Source: Adineta vaga
Taxonomy: Eukaryota; Animalia; Rotifera
Direction: 5' to 3'
Assembly (NCBI GenBank): GCA_021613535.1
Contig: CP075493.1
Span: forward strand, 7,316,001 to 7,380,000
Length of the DNA: 64,000 nucleotides
Both the position numbers and the translations under genes were made by a program. Below, in pieces: positions 8,143-56,182 of the stretch (positions within the stretch are counted from its first letter, which is position 1; every line of letters starts with the position of its first letter). The notes beneath the pieces are model-generated. The model searched no databases. It had not been told where the DNA came from and saw only the letters and a list, made by a program, of their open reading frames with translations.

Positions 8143-11100
8143 ATGAGTGGTGATTCAGCAAAACAAAATACATCAGCATCGACTACAAGTATGAATGTTC
8201 ACGATTGGAAGCGTGCTATGAAGGTTAGTATACATTCCATTAGAAATAATATTCTTATCTCGGATTGACACCCACACTTTCGGTACCTCATTTTCATCAG
8301 CGAACGAATAACTCACATTTCAAATATCTATCTCTTTTTAAATTCAATATCAGTTTATTATTAATGGTAAGCAAGTATGTTTTTCTGTTATTAATATACT
8401 TACGATTGACAGATACATCATAAAATTAATGAAAATTTGCATCGATTACAGAAAGTAATAAAAAAAGGACTCATGAATGTTTATGAAATAAGACCTTGAA
8501 GAGTGTGATTAAGTGTAAAACATATACATATCCTTCGTTTCTGTCCTTTTGTATTTTACGTTCCAAGATTGGTTTACTGTAGAATATTCATCCATTTAAA
8601 TATATGAGTCATACATAATAAAAACACATCGATATCCTTTGTTCGAAATATATTTTGAATAATGAGTATTTACTTTGATTAGATATTAATCGTGTATCTA
8701 TATTTAGATGGACATGAAAGGCAAACTTAAAGATGAAATAAAACAAAAAGATCCAAATAGTCGATTGTTTTATCAACATCAAGCGTTTGCTGAAACTGCT
8801 GTTAATGCTCTTGAACAACGTACACTCCTTGATGTTGATTCTGAACCGTAAATAAAACAAATTACTCAACACTTTTATTCTTTTTTTTCTGTTCAATTAG
8901 ATGGAATACACGTCATACAAGTATCATTTGTACTCTAGGTATATAGAAATTGAAACGAATTATCTTCGCTAAAAATTTGAAAATCGTTTTGTAGGTCCTG
9001 CATCACAAAGTGTGGACATGATTGAAAAGATGATCAACGCTGGAATGAATGTTGCTCGATTGAACTTTTCTCATGGTTCCTATGAAGTATGAATAGAAGA
9101 ATTTCATAGTGATGGAAAAATAACTCGTATTCTTTTCTCATTTCTTTAGTATCATAAACAAAGTATTGATAATGTTCGAGAAGCTGAAAATAGAAGCAAA
9201 GAAAATGGAGCAGTACGAACTATTGCTATTGCTTTGGATACGAAAGGACCTGAAATTCGTACGGGTATACTTGCTGAAGTAAGACAATTACAAATTTCAA
9301 TAATAATCGATGGAAATGAATATTCATTAGGGAGTGAATAGTGAACTTGATTTACAAACTGGAATGATGGTCCATGTCACTACCGATAGCAGCTATGAAA
9401 ATAAATCAACGAAAGATAATTTATATGTTGATTATAAAAATATAGTTCAAGTGATTAAAGTAAACAATCGAATCTTTATTGATGATGGTTTAATTTCATT
9501 ATTAGTCAGAAAAATCGGTTTGTAAAAGATTATTTATTCGTTATTATCAATCATGATAATGTTTTCTTTTAGGAGAAAATTATCTCGATTGTGAAGTTGA
9601 AAATGGAGGTCTTCTAGGTAGTCGAAAAGGTGTGAACTTACCTGGTGTACCTGTTGATTTACCAGCAGTATCAGAGAAAGATAAAGCCGATCTCAACTTT
9701 GCTGTAGACAATGATGTAAGAAATCAATTGACAATGATAAAGAATGTTCATTTTTCGATCGTTTCTTTTCTTTAGCTTGATATGATTTTTGCTAGTTTTA
9801 TTCGTAATGCCGAAGGTGTTCGTATCATTCGAAATTTACTTGGTGATAAAGGAAAAAGTATGAAAATAATTGCAAAAATTGAAAATCATCAAGGCATTCA
9901 AAAGTAAATAGAAAAATTGTTTCGTTTTTCTATGAAAGACTACAAAGATTCGGATTTGAATTAGTTTTGATGAGATTTTACAAGAATCAGATGGTATTAT
10001 GGTGGCACGTGGTGATATGGGTATTGAAATTCCACCACAAAAGGTTTTTGTTGCACAAAAAATGATGATTGCTAAATGTAATCAAGCAGGTAAACCTGTT
10101 ATATGTGCTACACAAGTAATTCTAGTTTCTTTTTTATGAATATGATTTGTTTTATTTTACGTTTGAAATAGATGTTAGAAAGTATGATTAAAAATCCTCG
10201 TCCAACTCGTGCAGAAGTTAGTGATGTTGCTAATGCTGTTTTGGATAATACTGATTGTATTATGTTATCTGGTGAATCAGCAAAAGGAAAATATCCTGTT
10301 CAATGTATTCAATTAATGCATGAAGTTTGTTGAATAGATTTCAGATGATTTTTGAATACATATATGTATACATATTGACGTTTTGTCTATTTTAGATTGC
10401 TCGTGAAGCTGAAGCATGTTTATTTCATCGTGAACTATTTGAAAATCTTCGTTATTTTACTAAACCACCATTAGTAAAAGAAAATAAATAGAATTAATTG
10501 ATTTTCTACTACGAGATTATTCTTTCTATCTCAGGATCAAATACAATCAGCTGCAATAGCTGCTGTTGAAGCGGCTTTTCGAAGTTTTGCTTCTATTATT
10601 GTCGTTTTAACTCATTCCGGAGAGTAGGAAAATTCCAAATTGTTTTTGATAAAAAATCTAAAAATTTTCTCTGAATAGATCTGCTCGTCTTATTGCTCAA
10701 TATCGTCCACGAGCTGTTATTATGGCAGTTACACGATCATTGAGAACTGCTAGGCAATTACATTTGTATCGTGGTTGTTGTCCTGTTTATGTCGAAGGTA
10801 ACTGATTTGACTTCGTTAATAAAACATTTATTATCAATCCCTTTTTTTAGCTGGACGAAGTAAGTTATCGACCGTTTGTATTTCATTTCTTATAAGTTTT
10901 TTTTAAAATTTAATTAGAAATAAATCAGTTTGATGATAATGAAAGTAACAGTAAGTCGATCATTTCGAATTTTCTTAATATCAACCGTAAATTCTTGTAC
11001 TTTTGATTTTAGATCAAGATGCGCAAAGTAAGAGGGAACTTTTATATGACGAAAAAAAATTTCTTTAAATTACTTTAGATCCGGATCATGGAGAAATAGT

Positions 11101-31695: not shown

Positions 31696-31800
31696 GTGTT
31701 GCTCTGGCAGATCAGTGTTGCCACCGATCCGCACGATTTCGTCATCGCAACATGTATTTAATCCGCAAGGATATTTACCTCTTGGTAAGTTGTAATAAGC
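31696..31800 (-). ncRNA. Spliced leader (SL) RNA gene, copy A
   Basis: The minus strand reads GCTTATTACAACTTACCAAGAG|GTAAAT, matching the recalled bdelloid SL exon (GGCUUAUUACAACUUACCAAGAG) followed by a splice donor. Identity to copy B covers 105 nt up to a T-run, matching the recalled SL RNA length of 105-106 nt. Confidence 0.92.
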
Positions 31801-31816
31801 AATCTGTTTTCACGAC

Positions 31817-31918: not shown

Positions 31919-31934
31919 ATCTCTCAGACAAATT

Positions 31935-32039
31935 GCTTATTACAACTTACCAAGAGGTAAATATCCTTGTGGATTAAATACATGTTGCGATGACGAAATC
32001 GTGCGGATTGGTGGCATCACTGATCTGCCAGAGCAACAC
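31935..32039 (+). ncRNA. Spliced leader (SL) RNA gene, copy B
   Basis: SL exon 31935-31956 GCTTATTACAACTTACCAAGAG, donor GT at 31957. Three differences from copy A, two in loops and one C-G to U-G. Confidence 0.92.
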
Positions 32040-43346: not shown

Positions 43347-44749
43347 CTATGTATAACCAATTGTTCTTTTCTTATTCGCTTGACTTATATCAGAAAGGGT
43401 TGGTATTGGTGTTTTCAATTCATTTGCTGTTGGTAATGCTCTCGTACCAGTTTCATGTTCTTTATTTATTTGTTCTCGTTTCTTTTCATCTTCCACTGCA
43501 TCTGTTGACGTATCTTGATCAAGGAGTTTGACCTTCGGTTTCTCAAATGTATATAATAATGAATCTGATGGTGGAAGCCATGAGGGTAAGATCTTTGAAT
43601 GAACACGCCATTGACTGTATGGAAAGGTGAGTACACGTTCAAAAACAATATATTCGAGAACATCTTTCGGTATTATTTCATTGCCATACATCAATCGACC
43701 AAATCGATCATAGATTGCACATGTCTTAATGATTGATTTACATAGAGAACAAAAGCAATGATTGAAATGTATCTTACCTGTTTTGAATGCATTCGTACAG
43801 TTATTTGTGCCATTGTCATACCCTTAAGAATTTCTCCACTTTTGATAGCTACGACGTAGGATGGTTCAATGTCTTCTAACCATTTCCAACGTAAAGTTTT
43901 GTAACGAAGACCACGACCCATTTCCTATCAAGATACGTTGAGATAAAAATAAGATGAATAATCTTTTTCCTACCGCGAATGATCCAGGTGTAACTAATTG
44001 AATAAGACGTTCTTCATCTCGACTAAAAAAGATTTCAAATCAAATCGATTCCATTCAAAAACTAAAGAATATTATTTACTCCATCAATGCTTGATGTGCA
44101 TCAATATATCTCTGTTGAGCTATATCAGCAAATAATAACGGTTCAAAATCTGGTTCATGTTTACGAATAGTACTTGAATGTTTTCTTGTTGCTAAATTCT
44201 TTTTTAATGATGTATAAAATTGATTTAATCTCTAAAATATGAATGTCAATCATCTTTAAACCTAAGTATTCTAATAAACTCACATCTCTTGACATTAATG
44301 TTGCTTTTCCATCACCTTCTGGAGGTACATATGCTTCAAATGGTTCCGCTAAATAAAAATAAATCATTGTTACAATTACTTTTCGAACAAAATAAAACAA
44401 GAATTGTAATTACTCGATGCATCAATATATAATGGTTTGTATTCAGCAGTACGAATTGGAGGTATACCTTCACGTTTGAAATATTCTCGTTGTTCCTGAA
44501 TTGTCGACGATCGAAGTTTTCGATCTCGATCAAAATCCGGTAAATCAATCTAAAAATAGTACCAATGAATTGAATGAACGAATCAAACAAAAAATATGTG
44601 CATACATCAAGAACTTTTTGTCGTCGAAATAGTCGCCATTTTGGTTTAGTATGATGATTAGGTGATTTTGTAAAATGTGTTCGAATAATGATTAGAAATT
44701 GACGACTATTCGTTGTTATTTGAGTCGAACGAAAGAGATTCAATGCCAT
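43347..44749 (-). CDS. MRPL45: Mitochondrial ribosomal protein mL45 (Tim44-like domain)
   Basis: [51 protein letters not shown]...[11 protein letters not shown]; N-terminal mitochondrial-presequence-like segment. Confidence 0.9.
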
Positions 44750-44975
44750 GAAGAAATTAGATCAACTAATCTAAAACAAAATGAGATATTTTTCTTTTTA
44801 CACTTCTCTATACATAATGAGAATCATTCGGTAAGTTTTGTTAATCAGATCCCTCTCACTCTAAAGTCATACGAAATACATATATCTAGTGTAATCATTC
44901 ATGTATATATATATATATATTTGTTTCTAATAATTATATAAAAATTTATTAGCTGAAAGACATTTATGTGTAAAA

Positions 44976-45554
44976 TTATTTTTTTGTTTGTTGTTGATAT
45001 TGCATTTGATGAAGAACACTTTGTGCATCTTTGAATTTTTCTAAAAGTTCTTGTAAACTTTCTTGTGAACAAGTAAACTGTATATGATTGATATTTGTTG
45101 TATATTTATCACGTTTTGTCCAGTCGAGTGTATAAATTGGTTCAAAAACTTTATCAGTATGATTGGTTTTCAATTGTAAATCTAAACGCCAATTAAGATT
45201 TAAAAGACGATCATGTTCAATGGATTTTTGTTTAAGATATAATTGTATTGTTGGTAAATGTTTCGTATATGCCGAAAGAAATCGATCTTGTCGAGATTTA
45301 TTTGTAAATTGTAAATCATCAAATTTCGATCGAACGGATGTTTCATCAAGATCATATTTGACACATTCAAATAGAAAAGTTAATATTGATGAAATAAGAT
45401 GTTTATCAATTGATGATGAAAATTGTATATTGCCATTTGTTGATGTAAATAATGAAAAGAGTTTATCAATTAAATCTTCATATGCTTTGTCAGAAAGATA
45501 TGTTTGATCATTTAAACGATGAAAATCTTCTTGGATTTCAATATTGAATTCCAT
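44976..45554 (-). CDS. COMMD3: COMM domain-containing protein 3 (intronless)
   Basis: 192 aa. COMM domain LLNLNWRLDLQLKTN...IQFTCSQESLQELLEKFKDA most resembles COMMD3. Confidence 0.85.
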   Translation of the reverse strand: MEFNIEIQEDFHRLNDQTYLSDKAYEDLIDKLFSLFTSTNGNIQFSSSIDKHLISSILTFLFECVKYDLDETSVRSKFDDLQFTNKSRQDRFLSAYTKHLPTIQLYLKQKSIEHDRLLNLNWRLDLQLKTNHTDKVFEPIYTLDWTKRDKYTTNINHIQFTCSQESLQELLEKFKDAQSVLHQMQYQQQTKK

Positions 45555-45727
45555 TTTTTATACTAACAATCAAATGAAAGAAAATGTTTCACAATCTAAA
45601 ACAACGAGAGAAGAAAAAGCAAGTTGGTTGAGTTCTGAAAGGAATGAAAATATTATATATATATATGACTAAACTAAAGATAAATATATGTACGCATATT
45701 TAAGTTAGATAACAAGATTGTATTTGG

Positions 45728-46943
<1,216 letters not shown>

Positions 46944-47495
46944 CTATAATTATTTTTACCCAATATTTTCTTAGTTTATACATATTTTTTTCAAGATTAA
47001 TAAGAAGAGTGAAAGCTCAACGTATATATATATATATATATTCCAAGGATCAATAAACAGTATGTGTGCATAGGTTCACAAGAAAGAGAGAGAGAGAGAA
47101 AAAGACTACAGACTACGTACAGAGAGCAAGAACAGAAGAAAGAAGTTACTTATTTTGGATAATTCACCACTTAAATTCAATGGTAGCAGTATTGATATAG
47201 GTAAGAAATAGAAATCAAAAAGAAAAGAAACAGATAGTTTGTCTTTATATATAGGTATATATAACACGTTACTATTTTGAAAAGTTGATAAACAGCATCT
47301 GTTGTTGTTGTTGTTGTTTTGTTTGTGGAATGATGCAAAGCAGGAGAGAAAAAAACAGAACACAAGCATGGAAGCGCCAGAGAATAACGAACAATTGTGA
47401 GAAGGAAAAAAAAACAATCAAAATTCGAAAGAAGAGGAAAATGAAAAAGAGAATAAACATCACACTTTGTACAAGAAATCATGACCAGCATATTT

Positions 47496-49240
47496 TCATT
47501 GAGCCGTTGTTGAATCATTATCATCAGTTGGAAAGAAAAATTGTTGTTCTGTTGTTGGACTGGTAGATTTTTCTTGTTCTGTAGTTGGTCGTGGTAATAG
47601 AACAGATAAAGGTTGCAAAGAAGAAGCTTCATCTAAAGATCGATCGCGATGAAATTGATTTCTATTTGATAATTTCAGTTTTGAACAATTTATATTGATG
47701 CCAAGATGTTTAGTCGCAGATGGAACAATTAATCCTGCTGATTGTATAGAAGGAATAACTGCTGAACGAGTAAAATTTGCTGGTAAAAGTAAAAATGATG
47801 ATGACGAAGATGATGTTGTTGATGCTGGAGATATAGGGGTAAATGTTAATGATGATGATGAGCATGTAGAATTTGTTGGACTTGGACATATACTTGGCGA
47901 ATTAGGTGGAGGAAATATATCATTATCAGAATGTTGAATTGGTTTAAAATGAGTATTATCATTCCCGTTTGAAGTCGATGAAGAAGAAGATGACGAAGGA
48001 GGTATCGAAGAAAGAAGGTTAAGTGATTGTTGAGTCGTAAGTAAACTTGTACTCGATTCGACCAAACCAGGTGAAGGAGATTCACTAAAAGAGAATAGAT
48101 AGAGATTTTGAATTTATTTCTTGATGATTGATACGTACGGTGAATTAGTTGGTCCAAATAATGATTCATTGTCACTTGCGATTCTACTTTTTTTATTATT
48201 CGATCCCATTGAAGTTTCATCTCCTTCTACAAAAGAAAAACAAGAAGAAATAAAATAAAAAGAATGAACTTTTCAAACAAACGTTTTCGTTTGAGATTTG
48301 GTGGAAAAGATGGAATTTTATTGGACGAATTATTATTAGTATTGGTCATCATTCCGATTGGACTTTGTGATCGACTAGGTGGAGAAGCTAAATAACATTG
48401 GAATGGTGCAACTTGTTGCTGAAGTGCTGGACTATAACATTGCTAAAAAGAATGAATGAAGAGAGCAATATGTTTGTGATGTCTTATCTTGAAATATAGA
48501 ACGTACTCGTTGATTACTGACAACTGCACAAGGTCGTGCAGGAGTTGATGGACTTGGTGATGATGAATAACACAGATTAGATGAATCAGAACTGTTGACT
48601 GATGATCGACGACTATCTATTGAATGTGCTGGCTGTTGTGGTTGTTGTTCATCCTAATAATGATTCAACAGAAAACAGTTTTATATTCTTTAGAAAAACA
48701 AAACTTACTCCGACTGCAAGATCCGTAAATGATATTGACATTTTGAGATTATCATGTAAATCACTATAAATAGAAAAAGTAATTGCGATCTAAATTTTAT
48801 ATTAATCAAATAAACTTACCGTTCTTGAGATGCTTCATCAACAATAGGATTGGTCATTTCATTTTTCATAATATGAGCAAAACGACTGAGACGAGTTTGA
48901 TGTGAACTCTAAATAGATATATAAACAAATCAGATTAAATCTATTCATTAGTATATGTCATCTTTTTCTTTTAGAACAATGTCTATGAAAGATTAATACT
49001 TACAAATGATGAACTATGTCTTCGTAGTTTGGAATCACAAAAATCGACATCATCAAATTGCATATCATTTCTAAAATAGAAGACAGATACAATTCTATAC
49101 TCGATAAAAATATTTAAAAAACTTTCATACTCAGCTGTATTAACAAGAAGTGGAAGTGCTGGTGAACTATTCGATCGTTTGATTGACAAATCGAATAAAT
49201 GTTGTCGAAATGCTGATGCATCATCTTCTTCTTCATCCAT
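47496..49240 (-). CDS. FAM122/PABIR family PP2A-B55 regulator
   Basis: IKRSNSSP, RRHSSS, QCYSPALQ, RSQSPI and LKRK appear in the order seen in FAM122A; Ser/Pro-rich; multi-exon. Confidence 0.75.
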
Positions 49241-49317
49241 TAGAACATTTGAATTCAAATTGATTTCTAAAATTTATCAATCTAGAATAAATAAACAAAA
49301 ATAGAAAGAATTCATTT

Positions 49318-50343
49318 TCAAAAATCCAATTCTTTCGACGGTGTGCATGTCAAAGATTTATTTTTCTCGTCACGACTCGCATCAGCACTGAGATCAGGTG
49401 GAATGGAATATTTTTCAAAAAGAAGATTTTTTCGATGCTTTATCAACTTTATTCCAATATCCCAAGTGTCGGGAATTAATGGTTGAATCGTATTTAATTT
49501 TGGTAATTTAATCAATTGACAAAATGCCACATAATCACTATGAATTACATTGGATAATTTTAATTCAAAAACTAAATCGGCTACTGTTTCGAATAATTTC
49601 GATTTTTCATTTAATGTTATGATACATGTTGCTAGGGATGTACGTAATAAGATTCTTAAATGATAGAGAAAGGCAACTAATTCATTGAAATGATTTGCAG
49701 GATTATCATCGAATAAAGATAATGATAAGGATTGAATTCCAATACGAAGAATACGTTTTTCTGTTTGTTGAGAAGAATAATCAGTTGTGAGAAGTTTTTG
49801 TAGAGTTTTCAATAGATAAGTTCGATAGGATATTGATGATTGTGATTGTTGATAATCATTCCAAGTTATTTTATGAATTTTAATTTGTTCAAAAAGTTCA
49901 TTCGGAATGGATTTTGTTGATTGAAGATCATACTGAATAGTTGATGTGGATGCTGAATCAATCGTTGAGAGATTTTCATATCGCCATGCTATTTTCATTT
50001 TTTCATTTTCTTCATCCGTACGAGTATCAGATGATGAAATATTTTCTTCTTTTGTCGGAAGATTTTCCGTTAGATCAGTTCGTAAAGCAGCAACACATAA
50101 ATCCTGTTTATTATAGATTCCTTCAGATAAATAACAACGTAAAATTGAATCTGATAAATTGAAATTCTTATCTTCATATATTAATAGAAGTGAACCGATC
50201 GGTAGACCACCACCAATAAATGTATCCAAAGACGAGACACCTGTTGATGTTATTAATAAATTTCCATTCGAATTCAATCGTGTGCCAGTTGGTAAACGAA
50301 CATTGGGCGTTGATGAGACTTTTTTCTTAAATGTGATCGACAT
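49318..50343 (-). CDS. ELP4: Elongator complex protein 4 (intronless)
   Basis: TSTGVSSLDTFIGGGLPIGSLLLIYED, MKIAWRYE, ILRIGIQSL, FLYHLRILLR, LIKLPKLN, FEKYSIPPD...CTPSKELDF*. Confidence 0.93.
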   Translation of the reverse strand: MSITFKKKVSSTPNVRLPTGTRLNSNGNLLITSTGVSSLDTFIGGGLPIGSLLLIYEDKNFNLSDSILRCYLSEGIYNKQDLCVAALRTDLTENLPTKEENISSSDTRTDEENEKMKIAWRYENLSTIDSASTSTIQYDLQSTKSIPNELFEQIKIHKITWNDYQQSQSSISYRTYLLKTLQKLLTTDYSSQQTEKRILRIGIQSLSLSLFDDNPANHFNELVAFLYHLRILLRTSLATCIITLNEKSKLFETVADLVFELKLSNVIHSDYVAFCQLIKLPKLNTIQPLIPDTWDIGIKLIKHRKNLLFEKYSIPPDLSADASRDEKNKSLTCTPSKELDF

Positions 50344-50583
50344 TGTTGCAAGGGAAAACGTGAAATATATGTACGTATGATTGTTGTATGTACGGTACGT
50401 TGTAATGGATGGATGGATGTATCTGTTTATTTTTGAATCGAACTGTGCTCGAAGAATGATTGGTGAGAAAGGAAAATAGATGGCGTTAGTTGAAAAAAAA
50501 AGAAAACAAAAGAAAAATATTTATTCATTTGAGTGAGATTAATAGGAAAAGATTTCAAACAAGAAGGAAGAGTTGTCTTTTTG
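50344..50583. promoter_or_regulatory. Putative bidirectional promoter between ELP4 (-) and EIF2A (+)
   Basis: Only 240 bp separate the divergent start codons; contains an ATTGG (CCAAT) element near 50459. Confidence 0.6.
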
Positions 50584-52944
50584 ATGGCTTCCGCAGAAGT
50601 AAAGACAAAATCTGTACCGTTATTAGCAGGTAGACTTATCAATGTTTATGATCAATTCAAGGTGATCTTGTTTTCATTTATTTAGTTCGTGGTCCCAGTG
50701 CTGTTCAATTAGTAACAAGTCCCGCTCATCAAGATGATATAACAAAAGTGGCTGTTTTTGATATAGAAAATTGTCGTTTAACATGTTTTAGTCGTAGTGG
50801 CCATCAATTTATTATTGCGACGAAAGATGAGTTAGTTAGGTTTTTTTTTCGAATAAGAAATCCTGAATTTTCCAACTTATTTTCTATAGTATTCAAGTGT
50901 ATTGTTGTAATACACGACAAGTTTTATATACTTTACCAAAACGACGAATAAATGCTATGGAATATAGTCCTCAAGATACATATCTGATGTTATTCGAACC
51001 ATTTACGAGTATGTAAAGTAAGATAGACAAAATTTAGAGCAAAAAAAATAAAAACAAGAAATACTTATTTAAATAGCTGTGGCTGGTGAAGAAGAAAAAC
51101 CGAACTTGACTATTTATAAGTCAAATACTGGAGAATTAATTGCTTCTTATATTCATAAGAAACAAAGTGATTGGTATGAACTACAATTCACTTGTTTGAT
51201 CGTAATATTTTCCATGATTTCTAGGGCACCGATTTGGTCTAATAATGAAGCTGTATTTGGTCGTATGCAAACAAATCAAGTCTGGTTCTATGAACCCCCG
51301 AATTTCGGTAAATTTACCCTATAAAATTCAATTTATAATAAATTTCTTGTGACATTTACAGAAAGATATGTCAATCGATTAAGTATTGAAGGTTTACAAA
51401 TGTATAGTTTGGGTAAAAGTAATGCGCCATATACAATTGCCACTTTTATCAAAGGTAAAAAGGTATATGAAGACACAAATATATCTATCTACCTATCTGG
51501 TATTTTACTATAATTCTTCAAAATCTTCTAGGGTATACCCGATTGTGTACGATTACTTAGTTATCCTGATCTAAAAGCGACAATTGCTAGCAAAAGCTTT
51601 TTTAATTTTGATCATGTGAATATGAAATGGAATTTCAAAGGTTAATTTCAATAATTTGAAATCTCAAACTATATGTAATCTAATTTCAGGAACAGCAATA
51701 CTTGTACTTTGTAGTACCGATATGTCAGAGAATAGTTACTATGGTGATACAATACTTCAACATCTCAATCGAAATGGAGATAGTAGTAATATTCAATTAA
51801 GTAAGAAATTTGGATTTGATTTACACATTCAGAATGTATTCGTGTTCTTTTTCTTTCAGGTAAAGCTGGTCCAATTTACAGTATGGAATGGTCTCCTGTT
51901 GCTGATGAATTTATCGTTGTTTATGGATGTATGATTTGGTTCTTGATTTAATTGATAGAATGTTTGATATTTTGTTTAGTTATGCCATCGAAAGCGACTG
52001 TATTCAATGCAAAATGTGATGTAGCATGGGAATTAAGTTCCGGAGCAAAGAATGCTGCATATTACAGTTTTGATGGTTTACATCTCGCACTTTGTGGTTT
52101 TGGAAATGTTGCAGGAAATATTGAAATTTGGTAAGTTAAAAATATTCAATAATGATTACAGTTAAAATGATATTGAATTTGTTTTTTAGGCATATGAAAG
52201 AACGTAAACGCATCTCACAAATAGAAGCATTGGATACAACACATTTTCAATGGTGTTATGATAATTATCATTTTATTACAGCTACAACAGCACCACGTTT
52301 ACGAGTGAAAAATGGGTATAAATGATTTCTCAATGAAAAAAAAACAAACAAATCATACTATTCTATTTTAGTTTCAAAGTGTGGCGTTTAACTGGTGAAC
52401 TTGTTTATGAATATAAAACTGGTGAAAATCAAGAATTATGGCAAGTTTTATGGCAACCAGGAACATACGAACGCGGTCAAAAAGCACCTATCAAAGCAGA
52501 AGATGGTTCTGCACCAGGAAAACGTAAGAAAGAACATTGTTTATATTTATCTTATTATCTCATGTCAAATAGCGAAAGCAGCAGCTGCATATCGACCACC
52601 ACATCTTCGTCAAACAACTCGACAGATTCCTAAATTACATGAAGATGTAACAGCGAAACCAGCTACATCTCATCCTCCACGTGTAGCTAAACCCGGTGGC
52701 GTTGAAGAATTATTTACAGGCGATCTTGAAAAAGATAAAAAAATAAAAACTGCTCATAAAGTATATTTCAAACTGAAACAAATCGATCATACTATTGTAT
52801 TTATATATCTATCTTTAGAAATTACAACAAATTAAAGGTCTAAAAGAAAGATTAGCAAACGGTGATAAACTGGAAGTTGATCAATTAGAAAAGATCAAAC
52901 GTGAAAATGAATTAATTGAAGAACTGGAAACTTTAAGACTCTAA
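50584..52944 (+). CDS. EIF2A: Eukaryotic translation initiation factor 2A
   Basis: PLLA|VRG start, DMSENSYYGD, GPIYSMEWSP, VVYG|MPSKATVFN, LCGFGNVAGNIEIW, TATTAPRLRVKNG, AYRPPHLR, DQLEKIKRE; many short introns. Confidence 0.95.
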
Positions 52945-53041
52945 TTTTTCTATTCCTAAGGAAAAAAAACATATGCATAAACTGTGTTTTTTTTTTAAAT
53001 CTAAACATGAAATTTGTTGACGTTGATTTTGTTTTTTAGAT

Positions 53042-54140
53042 ATGACAAATACTGTGCCAATGAATAATAATAATAATAATAATAATACCAATAATAATAC
53101 CGTCGTAGATGAAAGTCGAAAAAAACGAAAGTTAGTCAATGAAATTTGTTTTTCTTCTCTTATTCAATCAAGACTTTCTTTATCATAGAGTCAAACGTGT
53201 TACAATCGAATTAGGAGATATAACACAACATAATTTAAAACAATTGAAAGTACTCAATCGAGATGTATTTCCTGTTGCTTACAATGAAAAATTCTACAAA
53301 GATCTCTTAGGTGCTGGTGAATTGTGCAAATTAGGTATGTCTGTTTTGTACGTCAGAAATCTATTTGTATATTAATCAAAAATCAATTTGACAGTATTTT
53401 ATCTCTACAGATCAATGATTGATTAAAGCAATCAATATATACAGAAGAATAATCTTTATACTTATTGATGACTTGAGATTACATCCTGTCTGGAGAACGT
53501 TTGAGATGTTATCAGATGTTTCTTGTTTGTTTGTTTGTTTGATAAAAATCATACACATATATATATGAGTTAATTAAAGCTAAATTAGGCATAGAGATGA
53601 AGGACTTCTTTCAAGGAATGAAAGGAAAAAAAGGATTCGAATATATGCTTTTGTTTTAGCATACTGCAACGATATTGTCGTCGGTGCTGTCTGTTGTCGT
53701 ATTGATCTATTAGAAAACCGTCGACGTTTATATATAATGACATTAGGTGTTTTAGCAAAATATCGTGAACTTGGCTTAGGTACATTAATGCTTGAACATG
53801 TTTTTAAAATTTGTGAACGTGAAGGAAATATTGATAGTATTTATTTGTATGTATTTGGATAGTTTGTTTGTTTGTACAATGAATTGTTTTATTTATTTAT
53901 TTTAGACATGTTCAAATAAATAATGAAACAGCTTTATCCTTTTATAAAAAATTTGGTTTTCAAATTATTTCAACAGCAACAGAATATTATCGTCGTTTAG
54001 AACCCTCTGATGCTTATTTACTTGAACGTCCTTTTAAAAAATCCGCTACAAACGAACAAACAATATCAACATCATCTGCTCAACAGAATACAAAGAAAAT
54101 TCCAACCGTACCTTTATCAACTATTACAGATGTTGATTGA
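53042..54140 (+). CDS. NAA50: N-alpha-acetyltransferase 50 (NatE/San)
   Basis: IELGDITQHNLKQLKVLNRDVFPVAYNEKFYKDLL, AYCNDIVVGAVCCR, LYIMTLGVLAKYRELGLGTLML, HVQINNE, YYRRLEPSDA; N-terminal poly-Asn extension. Confidence 0.96.
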
Positions 54141-54310: not shown

Positions 54311-55542
54311 TTAAACATTCGGAGTGTTAGATTCTTGTCTGACGCTTTTGGGTGTTGATATTGTCGAGGGAACTACACGTTTTGAAAATTTTGCTATTTG
54401 ATAGTCGTCGTTATCAGATCGACTTAATGATGTAGCTCGAACGAGCATCTAAACAACAAGTATTATCATGTCTCAGATGAGAAGATAATAGATTTATACC
54501 GGTTCTGCAGTTGGATCTTCACGAGTCGATGGTACAGTGATAGCTAAAATTAAAGAGAAGATAATGGAATTCAATAGGATTTTTTTTTCTTGAATTATTA
54601 CTTCGTTCACCAGTTAGGCGACGTTCTGGTGTTAATTGTTTGATATCGGCTGAACCTTTTTTTGAGTTACGAAGAAATGCTAAAATACCACCGAGTATGA
54701 GAAGAAGTAGAAGCATAGCACCAACTGCAACCAAAAGCCATGCCCATACTGTTAAACGATGTCGTAGACCACGAATTTTGGGACAATTACGGAATTTAGA
54801 TGCAGTTAATTCAGAATTTCCTACGAAAACGATATTTTAAAATTAGATTAAAATTGAACTTATCAATTCTTTTAACCTGGTAATGTAAATTCACAAGCAA
54901 GTCTAAAATTTCGTTCATGACAATCTATTTGACGTATGCAGATATTATTTGAGCCAATGTCACTTGTTTCAAAACATGTACCATTCGAATATTCGGGATT
55001 CACACAATAATGAGGCCAATAATCTTCTTTTCCATCCTTACATCGTTGTAAAGTATCATAATCGGATGGCAATTGAATTGCATAATGAAGTTCATCATAG
55101 TCACGAAAAAGTGCTTGTAAGATTTTCGTTTTTTCTGGTGTATTTAAAACTAATTGTCGTATACCTCTTGTTGGTTTAGTACTATTACGACTAATGAGAG
55201 AATACTGTTGTCGTTCTAATAAACGTGGTGTTCGTCGTGTGCATAAACGTTGAGTTTGATGCCATGAATATCTTTGGCCCATCGTAGAAAAATAGAGGCA
55301 TTCATTACCGATTTGATAGAAACTATACGGAATTGACCACGTTGAAAATGTGCATCAAATGATGATTTCGAACTACGAATTGGCTCATAGATTTCTATAT
55401 TGTAAAATGAAATTCTTAGTATTAGTTCTTGTTTTAGAAATCAAATACCTTGTATGAAATCTTTGTCATCATCATCATATTGCGCATTTATTAATATAAG
55501 AAGCGAAATAAAACATAGTAAGATCAAATTACCATACGACAT
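54311..55542 (-). pseudogene. Type I membrane C-type-lectin-like protein with a 1-bp frameshift (null allele or assembly error)
   Basis: Signal peptide MSYGNLILLCFISLLILINA. Lectin-like [C]PYSFYQIGNECLYFS...YSWHQTQRLC...IDCHERNFRLACE, then a TM helix. Exon 2 is out of frame unless one base is restored between 55331 and 55332. Confidence 0.7.
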
Positions 55543-56182
55543 ATCTGCTAATCAATACGACAAGATTCTTGTTTATATGTCAGTGGGTGTTGAGTTAGGA
55601 AAGAATAACGAGAACTATTGGATAGACGAATATCATTGCCATTGCTTAACGTACGCCTTTTTTATTATGTATTTTTCTCTTTCTGTTATAGTCATTGATA
55701 ATATTCGAAGCCAATACATGTCGTAACCACACTATTCTGTCTTCTTTCCTTTCTTTTTCTTCTTTTCTTCTCATAATAGTAATACAACTAAGATTTTTAT
55801 GCCATTGTCTCAACCTAGTAAACATACGTCTTAGTTCTTTTGTCAATGTAAATATGTAAAGGGAGAGAGAGAGAAGAATATTATGGTCTGTCACTCTCCA
55901 TCAATTATAAATATAATCAGTGATCAGTCCAAAGAAAAAACATACAGATATACAGATCAATTGACGGAACATTACCTGTAAATTGCTCAGAACGAAGAAA
56001 GAAGAAATGATAACGATTGCCAACGGACAATGTACAATCATTGAAAATCTGAAGCGTTCTATATTTATTAAATTTACAGCAAAACAATCAATTACATAAG
56101 TTCCGAATACGTTAGGTAATCATCTCTTTTTTTCTCACTATTTCCGTCATTGATTTTCATCTTTCAATAACCAATCAGATTC

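Follow-up and report, generated by a model that had tools for sequence, protein, structure and literature searches.

In trypanosomes all genes are polycistronic, and the poly(A) site lies ∼100-300 nucleotides (nt) upstream of the trans-splice acceptor. In Caenorhabditis elegans operons of the SL1 type (SL, spliced leader), the U-rich tract before the acceptor AG is common to polyadenylation and trans-splicing, which compete, and the characterized cases keep the canonical AAUAAA. SL trans-splicing in rotifers has been known since 2005. The described layout most similar to the one analyzed here is that of the operons of the sea squirt Ciona intestinalis, where neighboring cistrons adjoin with nothing between them, the poly(A) of the upstream message comes after the acceptor AG, and a single SL is used for all genes (Satou et al. 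2006, PMC1488885). AATAAA was absent from 16 of 18 upstream Ciona cistrons, and the authors argued that transcription has to pass the boundary for both RNA ends to form (PMC1488885). SL trans-splicing has been reported on ∼60% of bdelloid mRNAs (PMC4824033); operons had not been reported in rotifers according to a 2021 paper (PMC7986045), and no later report of rotifer operons was found in the literature searched. In this work we analyzed a 64,000-nt stretch of the genome of the bdelloid rotifer Adineta vaga (contig CP075493.1, positions 7,316,001 to 7,380,000; hereafter the window), on the minus strand of which ELP4, a PABIR-like gene, GALT, COMMD3, and MRPL45, housekeeping genes of unrelated function, follow each other head to tail. 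The original prediction, made from the sequence alone, had proposed that these five genes form an operon.

We consider it rather probable, though far from certain, that the cluster consists of one or two SL-resolved polycistronic units of the Ciona type, without intercistronic DNA. Transcription would start at a conserved CCAAT/TATA-like promoter that ELP4 shares with the divergent gene eIF2A and would run through the downstream genes. The downstream messages would obtain their 5' ends by SL trans-splicing at conserved YAG/AT acceptors (a slash marks the joint), the upstream messages would be polyadenylated at the same AG, and the message of MRPL45, the last gene, would be the sole one to end with a canonical AAUAAA. 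As in operons, the distances between the co-oriented genes are very short: the predicted stop-to-ATG gaps of 77, 552, 173, and 226 nt agree with our coordinates, and the RNA end-to-start distance is 0 nt at two junctions. Five genes lie on the same strand by chance in 1 of 16 cases, and co-orientation alone is unremarkable; what goes beyond chance is the conservation of the acceptors together with the coinciding RNA ends.

Poly(A) sites and acceptors coincide at two junctions

The RNA evidence consists of Logan contigs, not raw reads, from four public runs (including X1, X5, X6, and X12). The contigs are spliced, mostly one per gene, and skip ten GT..AG introns; the runs are therefore RNA. Run X5 is 3'-biased and has zero coverage over the PABIR introns and 5' exons, which makes DNA contamination unlikely. 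In X5 the ELP4 contig stops at 49281 and is followed by a loose end of A13 (read as 13 T) plus Illumina adapter; for COMMD3 the contig reaches 44770 and continues in a loose end of A13 (also read as 13 T). Both AGs are directly followed by another A, so the tail starts were placed at 49282/81 and 44771/70, which are the acceptor AGs of PABIR (49283-82, TTATTCTAG/ATTG) and of MRPL45 (44772-71), respectively. The downstream messages begin at the same dinucleotides: the PABIR contig of X1 at 49283 and the MRPL45 contig of X12 at 44772, in both cases the A of the acceptor AG. At ELP4-PABIR and COMMD3-MRPL45 the upstream poly(A) site seen in X5 abuts the downstream acceptor, and the two messages share a boundary.

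The loci used for comparison are genomic and come from A. steineri, Rotaria magnacalcarata, and several metagenomic bdelloids. Five lineages have an identical 11-nt block, TATTCTAGATT, at a distance of 29-39 nt from the ELP4 stop in an otherwise variable spacer, and YAG/A is kept 12-27 nt before the MRPL45 ATG in five lineages. The upstream cistrons ELP4 and COMMD3 have no conserved canonical AATAAA. COMMD3 lacks AATAAA in its last 40 nt, and the signal at the ELP4 3' end is AATGAA in A. vaga, AATAAG in A. steineri, and AATAAA in lineage L021, with none in Rotaria. Among the cluster genes a conserved AATAAA was found after MRPL45 only. No RNA bridge across ELP4-PABIR, PABIR-GALT, or COMMD3-MRPL45 was found in the contigs of the four runs.

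This layout resembles the Ciona operons without intercistronic DNA in its unrelated co-oriented genes, poly(A) at the acceptor AG, mostly absent upstream AATAAA, single SL, and a first gene that need not be trans-spliced. It differs in that Ciona belongs to another phylum with an unrelated SL and is documented by dicistronic cDNAs and SL junctions, whereas the A. vaga cluster is known from contig ends and sequence; it also contains one 552-nt spacer and 3' untranslated regions (UTRs) of 36 to >370 nt. The SL1-type operons of C. elegans (cited in PMC1488885) share the lack of an intercistronic region and a poly(A) site next to the trans-splice site, but differ from the cluster in that ELP4 and COMMD3 are without a conserved AAUAAA. 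Like the SL2-type operons, the cluster has housekeeping and mitochondrial genes co-oriented downstream of what may be one promoter; unlike them (∼100-nt spacer, dedicated SL2), it has 0 nt at two junctions and one SL sequence, the SL being looked at within the window. As in trypanosomatid units, upstream polyadenylation would be set by the downstream trans-splicing signal and not by AAUAAA; unlike in those units, the poly(A) site falls on the acceptor, and the gene at the head of the cluster has a promoter of the usual kind. One conceivable but unlikely mechanism is that the free 3'-OH of the outron at the AG is polyadenylated without a cleavage signal; the T-rich TAG/ATT would then be both acceptor and poly(A) site, and any one precursor would give rise to just one of the two mRNAs, upstream or downstream.

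The COMMD3-MRPL45 spacer of Rotaria (L004 ∼9700-10000) is 457 nt long and carries a GC-rich insert with inverted ends, GCAGTGGCGGATCC...GGATCCGCCACTGC. The insert looks like a miniature inverted-repeat transposable element (MITE); the MRPL45 acceptor is still kept.

A conserved CCAAT/TATA-like block before the first gene only

As predicted, ELP4 has no acceptor and faces a divergent promoter: no AG is present in the 60 nt before its ATG, and no conserved upstream AG was found in the five-lineage comparison. Common to the five lineages upstream of ELP4 are a CCAAT box (AACCAATCA), a block (CTAAYGMCATCTAT), and a TATA-like element (AAAATAAACA) ∼75 nt before the ATG. The eIF2A/ELP4 intergenic region also holds CAAATGAATAAATAT, a motif kept between Adineta and Rotaria. 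In X1 and X12 the ELP4 contigs begin, without a loose end, at 50384, and the TATA-like element lies ∼40 nt upstream of this point. Among the cluster genes, a conserved CCAAT/TATA-like block of this kind was found before ELP4 only.

This last finding bears on the alternative that the genes are packed but independent, each with its own promoter inside the upstream gene or 3' UTR; the SL would then trim a short outron, and a shared U-rich signal would explain the coincidence of poly(A) site and acceptor. PABIR, COMMD3, and MRPL45 lack such a block, and with a distance of only 29-39 nt between the ELP4 stop and the PABIR acceptor in five lineages a PABIR promoter would have to sit in the ELP4 coding sequence. 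The formation of both RNA ends also needs transcription across the boundary, as argued for Ciona (PMC1488885). On the other side, the genome is compact (100.8 Mb), depths differ between genes, and a second A. steineri assembly keeps COMMD3 and MRPL45 intact without ELP4, PABIR, and most of GALT. C. elegans also has operons that contain internal promoters. On balance we regard independent promoters for the downstream genes as rather unlikely.

The acceptors form a class and the spliced leader is encoded in the window

The putative trans acceptors read AG/AT in 4/4 cases, vs. 2/15 of the cis acceptors in the same genes (Fisher p = 0.004). Across lineages AG/A stands before every downstream gene wherever sampled, with AG/AT at three junctions. 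Contigs of the downstream genes never reach beyond the acceptor on the upstream side; the one exception is the X5 contig 45555-45708 at the GALT-COMMD3 junction. Use of these AGs by cis introns in the 5' UTR had been named beforehand as an outcome that would speak against an operon; no cis joint ending at any of them was found in the contigs of the four runs, and cis 5'-UTR introns were rejected.

The SL donor genes expected in the same window are indeed there: two SL RNA genes were found at 31.8-32.0 kb (0 expected by chance). Both give the same leader, the one SL sequence found in the window; because the SL acts in trans, their location has no bearing on the mechanism. Only two contigs of the JGI collection bear the SL (L024 1181-1203(-) and L025 1135-1157(-)). 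Both are Rab-GTPase-like mRNAs of bdelloids, carry the complete leader at the end of the contig, and read GAG/ATTC and GAG/ATCA at the joint. A scan of this collection for the SL followed by 98-128 nt and the conserved MRPL45 motif gave 0 matches, which is uninformative with two SL-bearing contigs in all. The SL was also not found in the contigs of nine cluster-gene orthologues, all of which are genomic or metagenomic with introns or spacers still present.

RNA crosses the GALT-COMMD3 junction

One contig of X5 (45555-45708) connects the GALT 3' UTR without a gap to the COMMD3 ATG, passing over the COMMD3 acceptor on the way, and overlaps the neighboring contigs by exactly 30 nt on each side. 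RNA crosses this junction (observed in one run, as a contig and not as a single molecule). The acceptor motif YTTTAG/AT is kept 0-41 nt before the COMMD3 ATG in nine lineages.

The original prediction had placed a pyrimidine tract and AG just before each downstream ATG. Both strings quoted in it are present and a conserved AG precedes each of these genes, but the AG assigned to COMMD3 (45564-63) is probably wrong, the conserved one being at 45597-96. The AG at 45564-63 was rejected as the main site: it is not conserved, and contigs of X1 and X5 run 22 nt further upstream. COMMD3 contigs start at 45584.

Observations against polycistronic transcription

The observations in this section, and two more at the PABIR-GALT junction given below, weigh against SL-resolved polycistronic units. 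No SL letters were found at the four downstream acceptors in the contigs of the four runs; contigs drop rare ends. The contig starts at the AG would fit a k-mer fork between genomic ...TAG+exon and SL-joined ...GAG+exon, with both short branches clipped. Reproducible contig ends were also found at places other than acceptors (46916, 45584, and 49352), and exact ends therefore weigh less than they seem to; these three are probably heterozygous sites. Poly(A) ends were seen in one run only (the 3'-biased X5), and a contig is not a single molecule. Contig depth climbs downstream, from ∼20 for ELP4 to 67-171 for MRPL45 (X5, X12); it is a poor measure and was not relied on for ranking the genes, and the rise fits an extra transcription input. 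In one bdelloid lineage (L006) collinearity with the window extends over ∼30 kb, so that the conserved gene order may be general microsynteny, and synteny alone is weak evidence.

The missing SL letters also bear on a reading without any trans-splicing, in which TAGATT would be an initiator-like start (YYANWYY, +1 being the A of AG) and the upstream poly(A) would be adjacent by chance. CTAGATT and TTAGATT fit YYANWYY, and contigs start exactly at that A without SL letters. Other lineages, however, keep YAG and not the initiator pattern (TTGCAG/ATC, TTTTAG/AAAAG), two poly(A) sites coincide with this dinucleotide independently of each other, SL-bearing bdelloid mRNAs begin GAG/AT, and ∼60% of bdelloid mRNAs are reported to be trans-spliced (PMC4824033). 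We consider this reading very improbable.

The polycistronic transcription proposed earlier is upheld in part, by the conserved acceptors without a cis partner, the conserved promoter of ELP4, the coincidence of poly(A) site and acceptor at two junctions, the gene order kept between Adineta and Rotaria, and the RNA bridge between GALT and COMMD3; SL letters on the four downstream genes and a precursor over more than one junction were not found in the contigs. We infer SL addition to the downstream genes and co-transcription of the cluster.

The PABIR-GALT spacer: one unit or two

The ∼550-nt PABIR-GALT spacer has 80% column identity among A. vaga, A. steineri, and Rotaria (L002 5046-5623; L004 7128-7654), which is comparable to or above the protein-level identity of COMMD3 (74-82%). 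It contains the long invariant blocks TGTACAAAGTGTGATGTTTATT, TATGGCGCTTCCAT, AATGCTGTTTATCAACTTTTCAAAATAGTAAC, TGTAGTCTGTAGTCTTTTTCT, and ACGTTGAGCTTTCACTCTTCT, has no match to any Rfam family, and is not a known RNA family. Such sequence conservation suggests that the spacer may serve heavy post-transcriptional control of the PP2A-inhibitor-like PABIR or may act as a promoter for GALT.

PABIR contigs cover the spacer to at least 47118 (ends 47118/47111) at flat depth, and ATTATAG/AT is kept 0-3 nt before the GALT ATG in three lineages. Contigs that span most of the spacer and a conserved acceptor that abuts the GALT ATG agree with the strict reading of the cluster as one five-gene operon, with its sole promoter at ∼50.4 kb and four junctions resolved by SL trans-splicing, to which all evidence for Ciona-type units also applies. 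Against it, no contig was found on 46917-47012 in the four runs (47013-47110 is masked as repeat), and the stretch 50-100 nt ahead of the GALT acceptor holds a conserved (TA)n plus block that may act as a TATA promoter; the higher contig depth of the downstream genes also counts here. The spacer could be an extended, regulated 3' UTR running up to the acceptor, or it could hold an internal TATA promoter. Given the possible promoter in the (TA)n block, the cluster may be two units, ELP4-PABIR and GALT-COMMD3-MRPL45, and not one five-gene operon. A single unit with a sole promoter is in our view possible but doubtful.

At window positions 46165 and 50013, contigs of X1 and X6 match GALT and ELP4 up to that point and then continue for 45-255 nt into unrelated sequence. 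These continuations may come from divergent alleles, from chimeric contigs, or from alternative transcripts.

Gene order in other bdelloids

The original prediction called for a comparison of gene order across bdelloids, and the order is kept between Adineta and Rotaria. The complete arrangement NAA50<eIF2A<>ELP4>PABIR>GALT>COMMD3>MRPL45 was found in A. steineri, Rotaria magnacalcarata, and two metagenomic bdelloids. In Rotaria the match to the window breaks off immediately behind MRPL45. Each of the five genes occurs once in the six-contig 100.8-Mb haploid assembly; a gene-order test on ohnologues was ruled out, as none of the five has a second copy. If the genome is a degenerate tetraploid, as it is taken to be, no ohnologous copy of the cluster as a whole has survived.

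In the second A. steineri assembly (L001 5283-6640) a homologue of window 54598-55579 (-) is joined to the last 66 GALT codons; NAA50, eIF2A, ELP4, PABIR, and most of GALT are missing, and COMMD3 and MRPL45 are intact. This arrangement is either an ∼8.7-kb deletion on one haplotype or a misassembly.

If confirmed, Ciona-type units in A. vaga would extend the short list of animals with known operons by one phylum and would be a second, independent case of the layout in which the poly(A) site is the trans-splice site. They would help to judge if compact genomes have arrived at this layout by convergence, and in what way trans-splicing is linked to the formation of 3' ends. For the annotation of bdelloid genomes, the intergenic space is no guide to the UTRs and promoters of such genes.

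Genes of the cluster and their neighbors

The coordinates of the features are listed in Table 1. Multi-exon genes were searched exon by exon. GALT carries the N-terminal domain PF01087 (E 2e-35) and the C-terminal domain PF02744 (E 4e-62), and its RNA contigs have joints at 46314/46375 and 46777/46839. COMMD3 has 44 bdelloid orthologues, and its best database orthologues are Adineta proteins (82-86% identity). The last exon of MRPL45 matches human and pig mL45 in PDB (E 1e-16); its joint 44549/44606 was taken from RNA contigs, and the remaining introns were read from the sequence and collinear tblastx matches. The PABIR-like exons of the window, searched singly, gave no Pfam match, and the identity of this gene rests only on collinear orthologues in A. 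steineri and Rotaria, which carry PF27638 PABIR_N. An Rfam scan of 43-51 kb gave nothing above noise.

Table 1. Features of the five-gene cluster and related elements (positions in the window).
Feature	Position	Strand	Description
SL RNA gene pair, divergent	31779-31801; 31934-31956	-; +	GCTTATTACAACTTACCAAGAG/GT; leader donor, outside the cluster
AATAAA	43318..43323	-	∼25 nt after MRPL45 stop, inside AAAAATAAAATTAG; kept in A. vaga, A. steineri, Rotaria
MRPL45 (mL45, Tim44-like)	43347..44749	-	7 exons, 356 amino acids; last in cluster
MRPL45 exons	44749-44606, 44549-44413, 44347-44283, 44230-44080, 44022-43974, 43924-43778, 43724-43347	-	
COMMD3 3' UTR	44770..44975	-	∼205 nt; ends in TTTGTTTTAG/ATTAG
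COMMD3	44976..45554	-	Single exon, 192 amino acids; PF07258 COMM domain, E 1e-12
GALT-COMMD3 spacer	45555..45727	-	Conserved acceptor GTTGTTTTAG/ATTG, AG 45597-96
GALT	45728..46943	-	3 exons (46943-46841, 46779-46375, 46314-45728); 364 amino acids
PABIR-GALT spacer	46944..47495	-	Long conserved PABIR 3' UTR, then (TA)n and conserved block; ends AATTATAG/ATG, AG 46945-44
PABIR-like (FAM122A-like)	47496..49240	-	8 exons, 434 codons; seven GT..AG joints in 3 runs
PABIR-like exons	49240-49131, 49070-49004, 48908-48820, 48763-48709, 48653-48507, 48442-48283, 48226-48139, 48084-47496	-	
ELP4 3' UTR	49281..49317	-	∼36 nt; ends in invariant TATTCTAG/ATT
ELP4 (PAXNEB)	49318..50343	-	Single exon, 341 amino acids; first in cluster; PF05625, E 8e-53; RNA contigs 49352-50384
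eIF2A (+)/ELP4 (-) bidirectional promoter	50344..50583		Five-lineage comparison; ∼240 nt between genes

The cluster is flanked downstream by a convergent cation-efflux gene and upstream, on the other strand, by eIF2A. The divergent neighbor pair eIF2A > NAA50-like acetyltransferase (window ∼50584-54140) is conserved, with a gap of 79 nt in Rotaria (L004 1609-1689), and constitutes a second operon-like pair on the same promoter region.

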